Source: Pseudomonas aeruginosa PAO1
GTDB taxonomy: Bacteria > Pseudomonadota > Gammaproteobacteria > Pseudomonadales > Pseudomonadaceae
Strand: one strand, 5' to 3'
Assembly (NCBI RefSeq): GCF_000006765.1
Contig: NC_002516.2
Length of the DNA stretch: 64,000 nucleotides
The notes under the pieces were generated by a model that was not told where the DNA came from, made no database searches, and worked only from the letters and a program-made list of their open reading frames with translations. Of this stretch, positions 14,386-22,303 are shown in pieces. Numbering within the stretch: the stretch's first letter is position 1; every line of letters starts with the position of its first letter. The translations under genes were made by a program, and so were the position numbers.

Positions 14386-15765
14386 TCATTCCCCGCGCCC
14401 GCTCTCCAGCAATTCGGCCAGCGCGTCGATCTGTTCCTGGCGGTCGCTGCCGCCCACCCGCCTGCCGTTCAGCGACGACCACTCCGGATGCGCGCGCGCC
14501 TTGCGCAGCGCTTCCGGCAGCTTGCCTTCGCGCCACTGCTTGTCCTCCGGGGTTTCCAGGCGGATCGCCTCGACCGCCGCGTGGCCGCGCGTTTGCAGGG
14601 CTGCCAGGAGCTGCCGTTGGCGCAGCGCGAGCAAGCGCAGCACGGCGTCGTTGACAGTCAGCTCGCGGGCGCCCTTGAGCTTGCCGAGCAGGCGCGAGCC
14701 GTAGTGGCCGACGGTCTGCCAGGCGCCGCCGGCGAGGGCGCCGAGGGCGGCGGCGGCGCCAAGGGTGACGCCGCCCACCAGCAGGTCGATGCCGGCGCCG
14801 GCCGCGGCACCGGCCGCAACCCCGCCGCCGAGGCGGATACCGAGTTGGCGCAGGGTCTCCGGATTGAACAGATCGTCGCCCCAGCGGCCGTCGAGCAGCG
14901 GCAGGTCGGCGGCGCGGGCGTCGTCCCTGGCGAAGGCGTAGAGCCGCAGCAACGCTTCCACGCAGGCCTGCTCGCGCTTGCGCACCTGCTGGTGCAGGTC
15001 GCGGGTGGCTTCCTGCACGGCGCTTTCGCCGCCGGGCACCAGGCGCCGGCAGGCGGCGACGTCGACCAGCAATTCGGCGATCAGCCGTTGCCCGGCGCGC
15101 AGGCGCGCGGCGGCCTGGGTCTCATGGTCGGCGATCAGCCGGTCGAGTTGCGGCCGGGCGCGCTCCAGCAGCAGCGCCAGGCTCTCGTAGAGGCGCCGTT
15201 CGCCGTCCAGCGGCGGCGCCACGCTGTCGAAACGCACCAGGGCGTGCAGGCCCAGGCGAGCGAGGGCGGCGCGCCACTCTTCCTCGCGATGCTGCGGGCT
15301 GGCGACGAAGTTCAGCACCGGCAGCAGCGGCCGGCCGCAGCCGGTGAGCACCGCCAGTTCGTCGCGATACTTGGCCAGCACCGGTTCGCGGGCGTCGATC
15401 ACGTAGAGCCCGGCGTCGGAGGCGAGCAACTGGCGGACCACCTTGGCTTCCTGTTCGAAACGCCCGCGCGCTTCGTTGCTGTCCAGCAACCGCGCCATGC
15501 GTTCCGGGCCATCGAGACGCTCGCCGGGGCGCTCCAGGGCGTCCAGGTAGTCGAGCAGGGCGATGGCGTCTTCCAGGCCGGGCGTGTCGTAGAGTTCCAG
15601 CAGCGCTTCGCCGTCCACCGACAGCCTGGCGCCCTCGACGTGGCGGGTGGTGCTGGGGCGATGGGAGACTTCGCCGAATCCACGGTCGCGAGTCAGGGTG
15701 CGCAGCAGCGAGGTCTTGCCGGTATTGGTGTGGCCGACCACGGCCAGGATCAGCGGCTCAGTCAT
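14386..15765 (-). CDS. P-loop GTPase with C-terminal DUF3482 (hydrophobic Gly/Ala hairpin)
   Basis: G1 GHTNTGKTS, G2 STT, G3 DTPG; Gly/Ala-rich segment GGGVAAGAAAGAGIDLLVGG. ATG 15765 overlaps the upstream stop. Confidence 0.85.
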   Translation of the reverse strand: MTEPLILAVVGHTNTGKTSLLRTLTRDRGFGEVSHRPSTTRHVEGARLSVDGEALLELYDTPGLEDAIALLDYLDALERPGERLDGPERMARLLDSNEARGRFEQEAKVVRQLLASDAGLYVIDAREPVLAKYRDELAVLTGCGRPLLPVLNFVASPQHREEEWRAALARLGLHALVRFDSVAPPLDGERRLYESLALLLERARPQLDRLIADHETQAAARLRAGQRLIAELLVDVAACRRLVPGGESAVQEATRDLHQQVRKREQACVEALLRLYAFARDDARAADLPLLDGRWGDDLFNPETLRQLGIRLGGGVAAGAAAGAGIDLLVGGVTLGAAAALGALAGGAWQTVGHYGSRLLGKLKGARELTVNDAVLRLLALRQRQLLAALQTRGHAAVEAIRLETPEDKQWREGKLPEALRKARAHPEWSSLNGRRVGGSDRQEQIDALAELLESGRGE

Positions 15766-17143
15766 GGCCGGTCTCCAGCCAGGCCAGCGGCGAGGTCTCG
15801 CCGTGCGGCAGTTGCAGGCGTTCCAGGGCGGCGTGCCAGTCACCCAGGCGGTCGCTGTCGAGCGCTTCGCCGGGCGGAGCCTGGAGCAGCCAGATGCGGG
15901 TGCTGGCGGCGCAGCGGGCGAGTTCGCCGAGCAGTGCCAGGGTGCCGCGGTCCGGCGAGCGACGCGGGTCGCAGGCGATGGCCAGGCGCGCCGGCGGGTA
16001 GCGGGTCAGTTGTTCGAGCAGGCGACGGCGCTGCTGGCCGTCGTCGAGGATGCCGGCGTCGGCGACGCCTTCGGCGAGCTTCGGCGGCCAGGGCCGGCGA
16101 TCGTCCAGCTCCACCGCCACCAGCACCGCTCCGGCGGCTTCCTGGCCGGACTGGCCGCCCTGCGGCTCCGGCAGCCAGTCCGGTGCCGCGTCGCTGACGC
16201 CGAGGCGTTCGCTGGCCGGCATCAAGCGTTCGCGCAGCAGGCTGTAGCCTGGGTCGTCGAGGTCCAGGTCGAGGTGGGCCAGGCCGCGTTTCCAGCGCCA
16301 CAGGCAGAGCAGACCGAGCAGCGCGCGCGGCAGGACCCCATAGACCAGCAGTACGCCTACCAGCCAGCCGGCCCAGGCGTGCCGTGCGGCTTCGCTGGCC
16401 AGGGCGGCGTCGCCGCTGGCGCGGATCAGCTCGGCGTCCGGCAACGGGAAGCCAAGCAACGCCGGCAGGGCGCCGAGCGCCTGGGTAAGGGCGATGAAGG
16501 TATCGCTGCCGAGAATGGTGGTTTCCCAGACGAAACCGTAGCGGCGGGTCGCCAGCAGGCCGAGGAGCATGGCCAGCGCGGTCAGCAGGCCGAGCAGCCA
16601 GAGCCCGTGGACCAGCGCGCCGAGGCCCCAGCGCGCCAGCCGGCGCCGGCCGAGCAGGACCAATAGCGCCGGCGCCAGGTGCGCGGCGCGGGCATCGCGC
16701 GCCAGCTTGCCGCTGAGCCACAGCCAGAGCCGGCCGAGCGCGCCCGCGGCCTCGCCGCCGGCGAGCAGGCCGAGGGCCCAGCCGAGCAGGGTCAGCAGGT
16801 GCAGGCCGAGTAGGCTGGCCAGCGCCCAGAACACGTTGACCGGGCGCTGGCCATCGCCGAGCGCGGCGAAGGCCAGTCCGGCGCCGCTGGCCAGGGCCAG
16901 CACCAGCAGCAGGGCCAGCGCCAGCCGCGAACCCTGGCGCCAGGTCCGCAGGGCGTCGAGCAGGCCCTCGCGGCGGCCCAGCCAGTGGGCGCGGGTGAGA
17001 ATACGGCGCGGCAGGGAACCGCCCTGGGCCAGCGCCTGGCGAACCGCCTCGCTGTCTTCCAGCGGACCGGCCTGCTCCTCGCGCAGGCGAACGGCCTCGG
17101 TCAGCCAGAGGGCGTCGAGGCCGGGATGCGTCGTGTGACTCAA
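15758..17143 (-). CDS. DUF2868-domain membrane protein
   Basis: 461 aa; N-terminal TM cluster with F.WETT motif and a soluble alpha/beta C-terminus; overlaps the GTPase start by 8 nt. Confidence 0.8.
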   Translation of the reverse strand: MSHTTHPGLDALWLTEAVRLREEQAGPLEDSEAVRQALAQGGSLPRRILTRAHWLGRREGLLDALRTWRQGSRLALALLLVLALASGAGLAFAALGDGQRPVNVFWALASLLGLHLLTLLGWALGLLAGGEAAGALGRLWLWLSGKLARDARAAHLAPALLVLLGRRRLARWGLGALVHGLWLLGLLTALAMLLGLLATRRYGFVWETTILGSDTFIALTQALGALPALLGFPLPDAELIRASGDAALASEAARHAWAGWLVGVLLVYGVLPRALLGLLCLWRWKRGLAHLDLDLDDPGYSLLRERLMPASERLGVSDAAPDWLPEPQGGQSGQEAAGAVLVAVELDDRRPWPPKLAEGVADAGILDDGQQRRRLLEQLTRYPPARLAIACDPRRSPDRGTLALLGELARCAASTRIWLLQAPPGEALDSDRLGDWHAALERLQLPHGETSPLAWLETGHD

Positions 17144-17333
17144 GTCACCTCCTGTGTCGATTTCCCTGCCGAGCGTGAATCGTGCCCGGCCAACGGCGTC
17201 TGATCAGCGCCAAACATAGCAAAAGCGCCCCGGCGGCTCATGCTGGCTTGCCAGCCGGCTGGCGGCGGGGTGTGGGATTTTGACTGGCGCCGTGGCGAAA
17301 GCGTTCGGCGCCGGTAGCGAGAGGAACACTGAG

Positions 17334-17696
17334 ATGAAGGTAGTACGCCGATACCCCCTGGCGCTGTTGCTGGGGATGGCGGGCGCGCTGGCCGACGAGT
17401 TGCCCGATGGCTCCTTGCTGCAACGCTATGGCGTGCAGGCCGACCAGTTGCCGACCCTGGCGGCGGATCCGCCGTCGCGCAAGGAGGAGAAGGAAACGCC
17501 GTCGCGCTTCCGGGTGGAGCCGGAGCAGCCCTTGGTGACCTTTGGCGTCAAGGACCACAAGGGCATGGAACCCACTGGCAACCCGTCGATCGACGCCATG
17601 CACGAGCGCGATCGGCGGATCTGCCGGAACATCAGGCGGCAGGCACTGGAGAAAGGCAAGGCACAGCCCTTCGACGGCTACATCGAGTGTCCATGA
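17334..17696 (+). CDS. Small exported hypothetical protein (120 aa)
   Basis: GAGGA RBS; signal-peptide-like start MKVVRRYPLALLLGMAGALA; two Cys near the C-terminus. Confidence 0.7.
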   Translation: MKVVRRYPLALLLGMAGALADELPDGSLLQRYGVQADQLPTLAADPPSRKEEKETPSRFRVEPEQPLVTFGVKDHKGMEPTGNPSIDAMHERDRRICRNIRRQALEKGKAQPFDGYIECP

Positions 17697-17732
17697 GGCC
17701 GGCGCCCGCGTACGAGCGCCGGTCGGGCTGCG

Positions 17733-18884
17733 TCAGCGCTGCTCGCGCAGGCGCACGGCGACGTCCGGCTGGTCGCTGAACAGGCCGTCGATGCCGGCGT
17801 CGAGGTAGGCCCTGATCTCGCCGGCCAGGTCGCCGCGCGACTGCGGGTTGCCGTCGGCGCTGCGGAACTCCGCCGGAAGGAAGCTGTTTTCCGCGCGGAA
17901 GGTGTAGGGATGCACCTTCAGCCCGGCGGCGTGGGCGTCGCCGACGAAGCGGGTCGGCTGGCCGAGGTTGCCGTTGGCATCGCGGGGAATCACGTAGCTC
18001 TTGTCCGGACCGACCCCGTAGGCGTAGCGCGCCACCTGGCGCAGGCCCTTGGCGGTGGCCATCTCGGCGTAGGTCAGGCTGCCGCCGGCAGCCTGCTGGT
18101 CGTAGGGCTGGCCGCTGCCGTAGAGCTGCACCAGGCGGATGCCGGTGAGGCGCTTGAGTTCCTTCAGGTTGTTCACCTCGAAGGACTGGATGAATACCGG
18201 CGCGCGCGGACCGAGGTAGCCGTTGCGGTGCAGGGTCTTCACCAGCGGGCGTTCCATGGCCAGGCCGAGGCGCTGGAAGTGGGTGCCGTGCTTGATCTCG
18301 GGGTACAGGCCGATGGTGCGCTGCTGGCTGATCTGCAGGCTTTTCACCAGGTCGATGATCTCCTGCAGGGTGGGGATCTCGAAGGTGCCGTCCAGGCGCG
18401 CATTGCCCGGGCGGATCGTGGGGATGCGCTCGATGGCGCGCAGGGTCTTCAGTTCGGCGAGGGTGAAGTCTTCGCTGAACCAGCCGGTGAGTTCCACTCC
18501 GTCGACTTTCTGCGTGCGCTTGCGGTCGGCGAATTCCGGGTGCTGGGCGACATCGGTGGTCAGGCCCAGTTCGTTGTCGTGGCGGGCGACCAGCTTGCCG
18601 TCGCGGGTCATCACCAGGTCCGGCTCGACGTAGTCGGCGCCCATCATCACCGCCAGGGCGTAGGCGCCCAGGGTGTGTTCCGGTACGTAACCGCTGGCGC
18701 CCCGGTGGGCGATGACCAGCGGCGAGCGTTCGTCGCTGGCCGGGTGGCGAACGGAGGCCTGGCCCTGGGCCCAGTCGATGGCGCGTTGTACGTTGCCGGT
18801 GTCGGCGTGGGCGGCGCTGGCCAGGCCAGCGGCGAGCATCAGGCAGGCGGCGCCGAGGTGGCGGCGCAGGAAGGCTGGTTGCAT
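17733..18884 (-). CDS. glpQ: Glycerophosphodiester phosphodiesterase, exported (twin-Arg-type signal)
   Basis: IAHRGASGYVPEHT, VEPDLVMTRDG..HD, EIKH, IQSFE; ATG 18884 with GAGGA RBS and FLRRHL signal. Confidence 0.95.
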   Translation of the reverse strand: MQPAFLRRHLGAACLMLAAGLASAAHADTGNVQRAIDWAQGQASVRHPASDERSPLVIAHRGASGYVPEHTLGAYALAVMMGADYVEPDLVMTRDGKLVARHDNELGLTTDVAQHPEFADRKRTQKVDGVELTGWFSEDFTLAELKTLRAIERIPTIRPGNARLDGTFEIPTLQEIIDLVKSLQISQQRTIGLYPEIKHGTHFQRLGLAMERPLVKTLHRNGYLGPRAPVFIQSFEVNNLKELKRLTGIRLVQLYGSGQPYDQQAAGGSLTYAEMATAKGLRQVARYAYGVGPDKSYVIPRDANGNLGQPTRFVGDAHAAGLKVHPYTFRAENSFLPAEFRSADGNPQSRGDLAGEIRAYLDAGIDGLFSDQPDVAVRLREQR

Positions 18885-18963
18885 GACGGGTCCTCGTCGG
18901 CGGTTCGGGAGTGTTCCAGTCCAGCAGATTGACGCAGCCAGGTGATACTTCTTTGCCCGTTTC

Positions 18964-18981
18964 GCGACATTCCCGTGACAA
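18964..18981 (-). promoter_or_regulatory. Putative Pho box (PhoB site) upstream of glpQ
   Basis: Minus strand reads TTGTCAC-ggga-ATGTCGC: two half-sites at 11-bp periodicity resembling CTGTCAT-N4-CTGTCAY. Confidence 0.55.
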
Positions 18982-19074
18982 TCGCCGCCAGCGTGACGAC
19001 GTCGGCGTTTTCCCGGCCAATCCAACGAAAGGGGCGGACGGCCGGGGCAGGGTATAGGGTGACGGCGCTCGCAT

Positions 19075-19082
19075 AACAATAA
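19075..19082 (+). promoter_or_regulatory. Hfq/Crc A-rich motif (AANAANAA) abutting the RBS
   Basis: AACAATAA immediately followed by GAGGA and the start codon. Confidence 0.55.
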
Positions 19083-19093
19083 GAGGATCGGTG

Positions 19094-20188
19094 ATGGCTT
19101 CCGCGCAACCTGCCTCCGCGTTTCCCTGCCTGTCGTTGCAACTGGCCTGCCTGTTGCTGGGCGCCTGGCTGGCCTTCGATGCCCACGGCGGCGGCCAGGC
19201 CGTGGCGCCGCCGGCCCGTGTCGAAGCGCGTGTGCCGACGGCCGCTACCGATGACTGGGGACGCCAGCCGGACAGCCTGATGAGCGCCGTGCCGCCGCGC
19301 ACGCTGGAGGCGAGCGTCGGCGCCCGCGGCTCGGGATCGGCGAGTTCGCGACTGTGGATCGCCGATACCGACTTCCGCCTGCACGACGACATCGGTTTCT
19401 TCATCCAGCGCATGCTGATCCGCATGGAGCCGACTCGTCCCGGCGCGCCCTTGTCGCTCGACGATCCGACGGCGATGGTGGCGCGGATCCAGGCCGGCGA
19501 GATATTCGTCAGCGACGCCACCCTGGCGACCCTGCTCAACCAGGACCTCGCTGCGTCCCGCGCGGCCGTGCGCAACCTCAGTATGAACACCCGCAAGGAC
19601 GGCCAGGAAGTGCGTGGCGAGTTGTTGCGCAAGGGGCGCTGGCGGCCGCTGCGGATGCTCACCGAGATCGAGCTGAGCGGTCCGCTGGAGGTGACCCTGG
19701 TACCCCGGCGGATTTTCGTCGACGGGGTCGAGGTCACTTCGTCGCTGGCGGCGGCCTCGATCGAGATGTCCGAGGTGCTGAAGCTGAAGACCCGGCACAT
19801 GGAATTGGTCGGCAACCGCATCCGCGTCGACCTCGACGGATTGTTCCCGCCGCCGCGCCTGGACTTCCGCGTCAGTCGCCTGGCCCTGGCCGACGGCGGC
19901 ATGCAACTCGCCCTCGGCGACTCCCTGGCCGACCTGCAATGGCCGGCATTACGGGCGCCGGACAGCTACATGTTCATCGAGGGCGGCGATATCAAGATGG
20001 CGCGCACCGTGCTGGTCAAGGCCTATGCCCTGTTCACCAGCCTCAGCCCGGGGCAGCCGCTGCTGTTCAATCTCTACGACTACCGGCGGCAACTGCAGAA
20101 CGGCGTGATCCGCCTGCGCGAGGACGGCATGGTGCAGATCGCCGTGTCGCCGGTGAAGGCGCCGGCGCCGCTGGAGGCACGGCTGTGA
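19094..20188 (+). CDS. Exported hypothetical protein, paralogue A (possible LmeA/DUF2993-like lipid-binding fold)
   Basis: Hydrophobic N-terminal signal/anchor and beta-rich body that aligns by eye with the next gene. GTG 19091 is an alternative start. Confidence 0.75.
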   Translation: MASAQPASAFPCLSLQLACLLLGAWLAFDAHGGGQAVAPPARVEARVPTAATDDWGRQPDSLMSAVPPRTLEASVGARGSGSASSRLWIADTDFRLHDDIGFFIQRMLIRMEPTRPGAPLSLDDPTAMVARIQAGEIFVSDATLATLLNQDLAASRAAVRNLSMNTRKDGQEVRGELLRKGRWRPLRMLTEIELSGPLEVTLVPRRIFVDGVEVTSSLAAASIEMSEVLKLKTRHMELVGNRIRVDLDGLFPPPRLDFRVSRLALADGGMQLALGDSLADLQWPALRAPDSYMFIEGGDIKMARTVLVKAYALFTSLSPGQPLLFNLYDYRRQLQNGVIRLREDGMVQIAVSPVKAPAPLEARL

Positions 20189-21225
20189 GCCGGCGTCCGT
20201 GGGGCGTACTGCTTGGCTGTTGCCTGTTGGCGGCCAGCGCGGCCCAGGCCGAAAGCGCCATCGACCGGCAGCAGCGCGAACTGGCCCTGCTGCGCGAGGG
20301 CTGGTACCGGCAGGTCCCGCCGGCGCCGGTGCCGCTGCCCATGCGTACGGCCGGGCCGGCGGATTCCGGCCAGGATGGCGTCGGCATACTGCTGCGCAAC
20401 GTGGACATGTACCTGCGCGGCAACATCGGTTTCCACGTGCCCGAGGTGAAGGGCTGGCTGGTGCCGAACCGGGCCGGCCAGCCGGTGGACTTCGACCGTC
20501 CGCAGGACATGCATTTCCAGGTGATGGAGGGCGAGGTGCTGCTCAGCCCGCGGCAACTGGCCAACCTGTTCAACGAGCACATCCTCGCCTACGACGGGAC
20601 CATGTTGAAGGACTTCCGCATGAGCAGTGCGGCGGGACGCCTGGAGGTGGAGGGGCGGGTGCGTCCGCTCGGCGTAGGGCCCTGGCTGCCGTTGCGGCTG
20701 GGCGGCGGCGTGGAGGTGGACGCGGCCAGCGGCGCGCTGGTCTATCGGCCCGACCAGTTGAGGGTGATCGGTCTGCCGCTGTACGGGGCGATGAGCCTGG
20801 TCGGCCTGCCGATGTCGGCGCTGGTCAGCCTCGATCGGCCGGGGGCGAGCCTGGTGGGCAGCGCCATGCGCCTGGACTACCGCAAGGTCTTCCCGCTGCT
20901 GGGCATCGACGGCCACGTACAGGAGGCCTGGCTCGACGACCAGGGGCTGCACCTGCGTTTCTCCCAGGCGCCCGGCCAGCCGTCGCCGGTGTTCAGCCCG
21001 CCGGCCGCGGCGGGCCCATCCTTCCTCTGGCTACAGTCGGGCGACCTGAAGATCTTCGAAATCCTCATCACCTACGCCCAGGTGCTGCTGAAGACCGAGA
21101 CCCCGGACCAGGTGCTGACCTTCAACCTGCAGGACTACCGCAAGGTGCTGGCGACCGGCACCACCCAGGTCAACGAGGATGGCACCTTCTTCATGCAGGT
21201 GCCGCCGTATGCCAATCCCTTGTAG
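20185..21225 (+). CDS. Exported hypothetical protein, paralogue B (346 aa)
   Basis: GTGA overlap with the previous stop; signal peptide MSRRPWGVLLGCCLLAASAAQA. Appears only as the tail of ORF 19354..21225. Confidence 0.8.
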   Translation: MSRRPWGVLLGCCLLAASAAQAESAIDRQQRELALLREGWYRQVPPAPVPLPMRTAGPADSGQDGVGILLRNVDMYLRGNIGFHVPEVKGWLVPNRAGQPVDFDRPQDMHFQVMEGEVLLSPRQLANLFNEHILAYDGTMLKDFRMSSAAGRLEVEGRVRPLGVGPWLPLRLGGGVEVDAASGALVYRPDQLRVIGLPLYGAMSLVGLPMSALVSLDRPGASLVGSAMRLDYRKVFPLLGIDGHVQEAWLDDQGLHLRFSQAPGQPSPVFSPPAAAGPSFLWLQSGDLKIFEILITYAQVLLKTETPDQVLTFNLQDYRKVLATGTTQVNEDGTFFMQVPPYANPL

Positions 21226-21307
21226 GCCGGCCCGCACAGTTGGCCTGGAGTCCGCCGGCGCGAGTGTTTATCCTCGCGCCTTTGTCCTTCCACGATGAGG
21301 TAACCCC

Positions 21308-21814
21308 ATGGCACGACCGCTGGCGATGATCGCCGCCCTTGGCGAGAACCGCGCGATCGGCATCGACAACCGCCTGCCCTGGCGCCTGCCGGCCGACCTC
21401 AAGCATTTCAAGGCGATGACCCTCGGCAAGCCGGTGATCATGGGGCGCAAGACCTGGGACTCGCTGGGTCGGCCGCTGCCGGGCCGGCTAAACCTGGTGG
21501 TCAGCCGCCAGGCCGGCCTGGCACTGGAGGGTGCGGAAGTGTTCGCCAGCCTGGACGCCGCGCTGGCGCGCGCCGAGGCGTGGGCGCAGGCGGAGGACGC
21601 CGACGAACTGATGCTGATCGGCGGCGCCCAGCTCTATGCCGAGGCCTTGCCGCGCGCCGCGCGTCTCTACCTGACCCGGGTTGGCCTGGCGCCGGAGGGC
21701 GACGCCTTTTTCCCCGAGATCGATGGTGCGGCCTGGCGCCTGGCGTCGAGCATCGAACACGCCGCGGCTGACGATGCGCCTGCCTACGCCTTCGAGGTAT
21801 GGGAGCGCCGCTGA
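21308..21814 (+). CDS. folA: Dihydrofolate reductase
   Basis: IAALGENRAIG, LPWRLPADLKHFK, IMGRKTW, IGGAQLY. Confidence 0.97.
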   Translation: MARPLAMIAALGENRAIGIDNRLPWRLPADLKHFKAMTLGKPVIMGRKTWDSLGRPLPGRLNLVVSRQAGLALEGAEVFASLDAALARAEAWAQAEDADELMLIGGAQLYAEALPRAARLYLTRVGLAPEGDAFFPEIDGAAWRLASSIEHAAADDAPAYAFEVWERR

Positions 21815-21829
21815 CGGTTCCAGGCGGGG

Positions 21830-22303
21830 TCAGAGGGTGATCAGCTCCGCCTCGATCTTCTTCCCCGCCACTTCCAGCACGCCGATCCCGATCGGCAAGC
21901 TGAAGCGCCGCGGCCCGGCGCTGCCCGGGTTGAGGTAGAGCACGCCGTCGCGCTCTTCCTTCAGTGGCTTGTGCGAATGTCCGGCGACCACCACGTCGAT
22001 GCCTTCGGCGGCCGGGTCGAGGTCGAGTCGCTTGAGGTCGTGCAGCACATAGAGGGTCAGCCGGCCGATCTTCAGCAGCAGGCGCTCGGGGATGTCCGCC
22101 GCCCAGTCCTGGGTGTCGTTGTTGCCGCGCACCACCGAGAGCGGCGCCAGGCGTTCCAGCTCGGCGAGGATTTCCGGCTTGCCGATGTCGCCGGCATGGA
22201 TCAACTGGTCGCAGCCGCGCAACCGTTCCAGCGCCTCGGGCCGGAGCAGGCCATGGGTGTCGGCGATCAGGCCGATGCGCAACGGGCGGCGGGACTGGGG
22301 CAT
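21830..22303 (-). CDS. Metallophosphoesterase (YfcE/MJ0936-like)
   Basis: DTHG, HAGD, VRGNND, GHSH and NPGS motifs; start taken at ATG 22303. Confidence 0.88.
   Translation of the reverse strand: MPQSRRPLRIGLIADTHGLLRPEALERLRGCDQLIHAGDIGKPEILAELERLAPLSVVRGNNDTQDWAADIPERLLLKIGRLTLYVLHDLKRLDLDPAAEGIDVVVAGHSHKPLKEERDGVLYLNPGSAGPRRFSLPIGIGVLEVAGKKIEAELITL

Follow-up and report, generated by a model that had tools for sequence, protein, structure and literature searches.

The 64,000-nucleotide window of the Pseudomonas aeruginosa PAO1 chromosome analyzed here (contig NC_002516.2; "the window" is this whole stretch) contains two adjacent genes, named A (19094..20188, + strand, 364 aa) and B (20185..21225, + strand, 346 aa), that encode paralogous, exported, beta-rich proteins of a widespread family. 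We propose that the two products act as a pair and form a heterodimeric periplasmic carrier of hydrophobic molecules, a reading that we regard as about evenly poised between right and wrong. The segment is that of a pseudomonad (GC content 67-70%), and close homologues of A and B carry Pseudomonas aeruginosa labels. Since the neighboring glpQ is PA0347 (PMC4513871), the gene order would make A PA0348 and B PA0349. A preliminary description of this locus had joined the pair with glpQ into a phosphate-scavenging module, and this association is weighed below together with other explanations.

Alignment of A with B gave 29% identity across 315 residues (E = 4e-33), which is nearly the whole mature length, and the three motif pairs that had been picked out by eye were all found in the two proteins, so that the resemblance along their length described before is real. 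The overlap of the two genes was also found as described, with the sequence GTGA at 20185-20188 lying inside ctGTGAgcc. At this junction (20173..20188, + strand), GGAGG and a 7-nt spacer precede the GTG start of B, which is placed over the TGA stop of A, an arrangement that suggests translational coupling. Gene A itself has the ribosome-binding site AAGAGGA 6 nt 5' of its ATG.

Both proteins were previously said to carry export signals, which is straightforward for B and only partly so for A. The leader of B is a canonical Sec signal ending in LLAASAAQA|ES. It starts with MSRRPWG (20185..20250, + strand), which resembles a twin-arginine translocation (Tat) signal; the arginine pair is missing in the orthologues, and the start is for this reason probably not a Tat signal. 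The leader of A in P. aeruginosa, MASAQPASAFPCLSLQLACLLLGAWLAFDA, is hydrophobic, as expected from the earlier claim, but atypical, in that it has neither a charged n-region nor a clean AXA or lipobox cleavage site; because of these features it may be a signal anchor. The A orthologues of other species carry ordinary signal peptides. Among distant members of the family, about 40% have lipobox-like leaders, which the Pseudomonas pair does not.

The description of A and B as beta-rich was borne out by AlphaFold2 models of the monomers, which were built on alignments of 27-28 sequences and were confident, with a predicted local distance difference test score (pLDDT) of 82.6 and a predicted template modelling score (pTM) of 0.76 for A, and of 84.8 and 0.78 for B. 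In both models, long strands are arranged around one helix of 12-15 residues and are followed by a second beta region with shorter strands. Motifs conserved throughout the family include FDDP (around residues 121-125 of A), L..L(F/L)N (144-149) and FPPP (251-254), and toward the C-terminus GGD.K (297-301) and F.LYDYR (325-331). Duplication within each protein was considered and rejected, since hhalign, run with the two halves of the family alignment (N-terminal versus C-terminal), returned a probability of 0.9%.

The most consistent property of the family is its pairing. We surveyed 45 genome loci, mapped with the window's own proteins as queries, and about 20 metagenome loci, the locus gathering having used the narrower alignments A2 and A5. 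A precedes B in every one of the 45 genome loci and in nearly all metagenome loci with sufficient flanking sequence, and the pair ranges from Pseudomonas, Zestomonas and Ralstonia to marine and other gammaproteobacterial contigs. One low-GC metagenome contig (L071:1..3788) carries two consecutive pairs, A-B-A-B. The A/B junction is an ATGA overlap in Zestomonas, P. nitroreducens and Ralstonia, and overlaps of 4 nt or 1 nt were found in six further loci (L047, L051, L054, L056, L082 and L083). When scored with subfamily hidden Markov models, the first gene or the N-terminal half was always A-type and the second always B-type. Maximum-likelihood analysis groups the B-type sequences in a single clade (support 87/82), with B of the window inside it and A of the window in the A clade. 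The same lineage groupings recur in the A and B sets, namely Pseudomonas with L051, Ralstonia with P0047, L047 with L054, L024 with L056 and L082 with L072, so that the two genes have evidently passed down together ever since an old duplication.

Recurrent gene fusion is a classic indicator of physical association. Single chains of 630-780 residues in which A is followed by B were found in several family members (P0046, P0047, P0048 and P0065/P0078), and such fusions arose independently at least three to four times. Taken together, the fixed order, the 4-nt overlaps in distant genera, the mirrored trees and the repeated fusions are strong genomic evidence and make an A-B heterodimer plausible, and on this point the possibility raised in the preliminary description is retained. 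Two further sequences of P. aeruginosa origin, P0192 (648 aa) and P0018 (419 aa), have A and B in one frame with 94-99% identity to the window; the joined frames may reflect either faulty assembly or strain variation in which a frameshift or deletion has affected the GTGA junction.

A and B belong to a large family without a curated name. Searches of both proteins against Pfam and NCBIfam gave no match, and the family profile had no match at E<=10 in a sequence search of the PDB. A word-index search reached only the P. aeruginosa group, comprising Zestomonas, P. citronellolis, P. knackmussii, P. nitroreducens and relatives; the resulting impression of a narrow family was overturned by an exhaustive profile search, which returned 1162 representatives (clusters at 50% identity) at E<=1e-3, including 720 at E<=1e-10. 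UniRef names some B orthologues "DUF2125 domain-containing", and when the proteins so named "DUF2125" or "DUF2993" were compared with current Pfam models, neither name was recovered; no Pfam match to DUF2125 or AsmA was obtained at E<=10 for P0024, P0026, P0034 or the consensus sequences.

The best lead to what the pair binds comes from LmeA (PF11209, formerly DUF2993), the only Pfam family matched by more than one of 115 diverse members (seven members, best E = 7e-4). The consensus of the broad family scored 19.1-22.3 bits against this profile (E = 1.4e-3 to 1.5e-4; gathering threshold 27.3 bits), with consensus residues 98-238 aligned to profile positions 94-215 of 217. By the Pfam threshold, the proteins are not members of the LmeA family, and the orthologue and subfamily consensus sequences did not match PF11209. 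In keeping with the export of LmeA-type proteins, B has its Sec signal and A its hydrophobic leader. The C-terminal part of DUF2993, where the match of the consensus falls, has been described as a TULIP lipid-transfer domain, DUF2125 has been linked to the N-terminus of DUF2993, and TULIP proteins have been described as head-to-head dimers or pseudo-dimers (Levine, 2019; PMC6791001). Foldseek comparison of the B model with the PDB placed the TULIP protein YceB (3l6i) at the top (probability 0.87, TM 0.40, E = 0.07, not significant), with LBP, BPI and P47 also in the list. For A, nothing TULIP-like stood near the top and nothing was significant, and the list consisted mostly of small lipid binders. 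Neither model had a Foldseek match at E<=0.001. The resemblance to LmeA/DUF2993 or TULIP-like grooves proposed earlier thus receives weak support from matches below threshold. An LmeA/TULIP-like mode of action is the best lead for A and B, its support weak but consistent.

The genes that surround the pair in relatives point to a hydrophobic cargo handled at the outer membrane. FadL/TodX proteins are outer-membrane channels for hydrophobic substrates. In P0061, a single chain joins a FadL/TodX channel (PF03349, E = 2e-37) to an A-type domain; the B gene that comes next overlaps it, and a TetR regulator, a fatty-acid desaturase and a P450 are encoded alongside. In L054/55, TetR and DUF2147 genes come first, then a FadL gene directly followed by the pair; in L082 the FadL gene is directly downstream and convergent, and in L056 it is about 5 kb away. 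FadL neighbors were seen in 4 of about 11 independent lineages examined. Other partners are more varied. The pair is preceded by a TonB-dependent receptor gene and followed by one of the OmpA family in L072, preceded by a 4HBT thioesterase gene and followed by a BBP2 porin gene in L024, and preceded in L051 by genes for TetR, an MpaB/Lcp-type oxygenase and a protein of acyl-CoA-synthetase type; the family member P0134 bears a C-terminal OmpA peptidoglycan-binding domain. For the Ralstonia pair, the upstream gene encodes a MerR regulator and the downstream one an adhesin-E-like lipoprotein, and marine gammaproteobacterial loci show housekeeping neighbors only. In Ralstonia locus L029 (656..4400), a conserved operon for a short-chain dehydrogenase/reductase (SDR), an alpha/beta-hydrolase and a PF10118 metal-hydrolase stands upstream of the pair, and the MerR regulator is divergent, facing gene A.

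A phenotype has also been reported. In a 2026 library of hypothetical-gene deletions in PAO1, the PA0348-49 operon deletion was among the 19 of 938 mutants with impaired growth, and the impairment was seen in rich lysogeny broth (LB) (PMC13680508). This defect fits a housekeeping envelope role better than a role confined to starvation. In the literature searched, no other paper discussing PA0348/PA0349 and no expression data for the pair were found, and the PA14 locus tags led to no papers.

Combining these observations, we suggest that A and B constitute a bicistronic, translationally coupled operon of anciently duplicated and co-inherited exported proteins, distantly LmeA/TULIP-like, whose products would most likely assemble into a 1:1 periplasmic heterodimer, a split version of the BPI-type pseudo-dimers. 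Such a complex might bind fatty acids, lipids or similar hydrophobic compounds and hand its cargo between outer-membrane beta-barrel channels and the inner membrane, and in this way it would contribute to the traffic and homeostasis of envelope lipids. What the analysis shows is paralogy, export leaders, a beta-rich fold, strict pairing in a fixed order, mirrored trees, repeated fusion and a glpQ neighbor limited to one lineage; that A and B bind each other, that their cargo is hydrophobic and which way it moves are those parts of the scheme that we infer. A bolder version, which we put forward tentatively and consider rather doubtful, is that in Gram-negative bacteria this family supplies the periplasmic stage of hydrophobic-substrate traffic that has so far been missing. 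A and B would then be a heterodimeric shuttle of TULIP-like build, docking beneath outer-membrane barrels of the FadL/TodX type and others and moving fatty acids or lipids across the periplasm, and in P. aeruginosa the shuttle would have turned into a housekeeping factor that normal growth requires.

Several observations weigh against a lipid carrier. A and B of the window did not match PF11209 at E<=1 and match no lipid-binding family of Pfam or NCBIfam; the PF11209 matches of the broader family are all below the Pfam threshold, and the Foldseek results of both models stay at E>=0.05 and TM<=0.40. All four lineages with FadL fall within one well-supported subclade that includes neither Pseudomonas nor Ralstonia, so that FadL speaks to the kind of function of the family rather than to a partner in the window, within which no sign of a partner channel was seen near the pair. 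The neighbors folA and DUF2868/DUF3482 in Pseudomonas, and pckA in the marine lineage, are uninformative on lipids. Finally, the assignment of the growth defect to A and B depends on the locus tags deduced from position. On balance, A and B are best placed among TULIP/LmeA-like envelope lipid binders with moderate confidence, because the carrier reading is founded on homology below threshold and on gene context in relatives.

The same context could be read differently, with A and B as a periplasmic accessory or tether for outer-membrane beta-barrels, acting in their assembly, anchoring or gating instead of carrying lipids. The variety of partners (FadL/TodX, a TonB-dependent receptor, the BBP2 porin and OmpA domains), the lipoprotein-type leaders of many distant members and the lack of significance of the structural matches to lipid binders would all suit this explanation. 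We nevertheless consider it unlikely, as the recurring partner is specifically FadL/TodX, accompanied by TetR and genes of acyl or hydrocarbon metabolism, and, at the sequence level, the phospholipid-binding LmeA family is the only one matched repeatedly.

Far less probable is the module that had originally been proposed, in which A and B would act with GlpQ under phosphate starvation, be controlled by PhoB through the shared intergenic region and deliver (lyso)phospholipids or glycerophosphodiesters to GlpQ. The arrangement that suggested it was confirmed: glpQ (17733..18884, - strand), which encodes a glycerophosphodiester phosphodiesterase of 383 aa from the ATG at 18884, is divergent from A, and the two genes share a spacer of 209 bp (18885..19093), close to the 200 bp estimated before. 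GlpQ passed the threshold of the Pfam GDPD family (PF03009, E = 1.1e-42, 147.3 bits, cut-off 23.6) and scored 212.9 bits against NCBIfam PRK11143, the periplasmic GlpQ equivalog, under its cut-off of 254 bits. Its leader is MQPAFLRRHLGAACLMLAAGLASAAHA; the list of open reading frames (ORFs) stretches the gene to a TTG at 19079. The glpQ promoter is bound by both PhoB and TctD, as seen for PhoB by chromatin immunoprecipitation sequencing and electrophoretic mobility shift assay (PMC4513871), and the gene is activated by PhoB and repressed by TctD, its product being secreted by Xcp (PMC4513871, PMC4899797, PMC9769906). The published PhoB binding in the shared region and the weak LmeA-likeness of A and B are further points in favor of the module.

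Inspection of the spacer by eye revealed a Pho-box-like direct repeat on the glpQ side (18964..18981, - strand), TTGTCAC-GGGA-ATGTCGC, with 5 mismatches to the Escherichia coli consensus, and PhoB would bind at these very bases. A TATCAC element (18947..18942) follows 16 nt past the repeat in a placement that suits glpQ, and the repeat lies 113-130 nt upstream of the start of A, in an orientation and position that fit glpQ. A strict Pho-box scan (CTGTCATNNNNCTGTCAT, E. coli consensus, at most 3 mismatches) had no match between glpQ and A, and across the window it gave 4 sites against 2.2 expected. A scan for sigma-70 consensus promoters in 17200..21900 returned no site. Gene A has a conserved upstream block of its own (19022..19087, + strand), CCAACGA … GGGTATAGGGTGAC … AAGAGGA, the last element being the ribosome-binding site. 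In an alignment of the A upstream regions of 8 Pseudomonas/Zestomonas species, the elements CCAAGGA, TATAGGGTG and AACAAGAGG were kept even where glpQ is absent, and because of this conservation the control region of A must be older than the insertion of glpQ, which argues against a shared PhoB-controlled module.

The module also fails on the distribution of the neighbors. Within the 45 genome loci, glpQ and the small ORF next to it accompany the pair in P. paraeruginosa only, and over all loci they are confined to P. aeruginosa (or P. aeruginosa-like) and P. paraeruginosa (L001, L058-60 and L068). No glpQ was present within 6 kb of the pair in 22 other Pseudomonas/Zestomonas loci, 21 Ralstonia loci and all other lineages. 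Instead, in 22/22 Pseudomonas/Zestomonas genome loci outside the aeruginosa group, A is directly divergent from a DUF2868 gene and folA follows B, and none of the Pseudomonas neighbors were found in the 21 Ralstonia loci and one gammaproteobacterial metagenome-assembled genome. Accordingly, glpQ and the small ORF are a recent insertion specific to the P. aeruginosa lineage and stand outside the A/B unit; the co-occurrence with glpQ that the module predicts thus failed, as the pair is conserved without glpQ elsewhere. This insertion also parted the DUF3482 and DUF2868 genes from A in P. aeruginosa.

The biochemistry of GlpQ disagrees with the module as well. Under phosphate starvation, the Xcp type II system exports GlpQ out of the cell (PMC4899797, PMC9769906), where its substrates are the deacylated, water-soluble diesters of phospholipid head groups (PMC4899797). 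Being extracellular and acting on soluble deacylated diesters, GlpQ needs no lipid carrier, and the suggestion that A and B deliver lipids to it is not supported. Moreover, PA0348/PA0349 go unmentioned in the Pho papers examined, and the deletion impairs growth in LB, a medium that is not phosphate-limited. The pair should therefore not carry a GlpQ/Pho phosphate-scavenging label, which is a case of guilt by association now corrected.

Equally hard to credit is the idea that A and B form the periplasmic arm of a membrane-remodelling system with the divergent DUF2868 and DUF3482 GTPase pair, since this linkage, complete in the 22 loci above and also seen in related metagenome loci, is limited to one genus-level lineage and missing in Ralstonia and all other lineages examined, and the glpQ insertion in P. 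aeruginosa separated the two units with neither being lost.

As for the remainder of the locus, the DUF3482 GTPase gene lies at 14386..15843 and the DUF2868 gene at 15758..17143, both on the - strand; the two genes overlap by 86 nt (14386..17143, - strand). The small ORF (17280..17696, + strand) has the likely start MKVVRRYPLALLLGMAGALA, which resembles a signal peptide, and its Pfam search gave no match. It was found solely where glpQ is, in P. aeruginosa and P. paraeruginosa, and its identity between these two species is 72%, compared with 95-99% for the adjoining genes. Downstream of B lies folA (21308..21814, + strand; Pfam DHFR_1), whose 3' flank holds genes for a calcineurin-like phosphoesterase and a xanthine/uracil-type permease, and ilvD. 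A terminator-like hairpin, GGCGCGAG…CTCGCGCC followed by TTTGTCCTTC, may occupy the gap between B and folA (21257..21290, + strand); the call is weak, since chance alone would yield 2.0 hairpins of this kind in the region and the scan gave 3.

The route by which fatty acids, hydrocarbons and lipids traverse the periplasm once through a FadL-type channel is an unsettled question in the field, as is, more broadly, the movement of envelope lipids between the two membranes. With about 1,100 clusters, invariable pairing or fusion, a link to FadL in some lineages and a deletion that is reported to slow growth in P. aeruginosa, this uncurated family is a candidate for the periplasmic step. Comparison with known systems helps to place it. 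With FadL/TodX (PF03349), the family shares a setting, in that the pair is fused or adjacent to the channel in relatives, beside TetR and fatty-acid or hydrocarbon enzymes; A and B are themselves neither barrels nor homologous to FadL, and no FadL stands beside the Pseudomonas or Ralstonia pairs. The likeness to the AsmA-like/Chorein-N and DUF2125 bridge proteins consists in the UniRef DUF2125 labels, with no Pfam match to set beside them. LmeA, a mycobacterial periplasmic phospholipid-binding protein, resembles A and B as an exported, beta-rich envelope protein with a long helix, whereas A and B are about 100 residues longer, have an additional conserved C-terminal beta region with GGD.K and F.LYDYR, and occur as an obligate pair or fusion in Proteobacteria rather than in the Actinobacteria and Cyanobacteria that hold LmeA. 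Finally, although A and B, compared as predicted monomers, have no significant sequence or structural match among the TULIP proteins (BPI/LBP/CETP, DUF4403 and YceB/DUF1439), those proteins are likewise made of two homologous halves, joined in one chain or separate, a design paralleled by the pairs and fusions of A and B.

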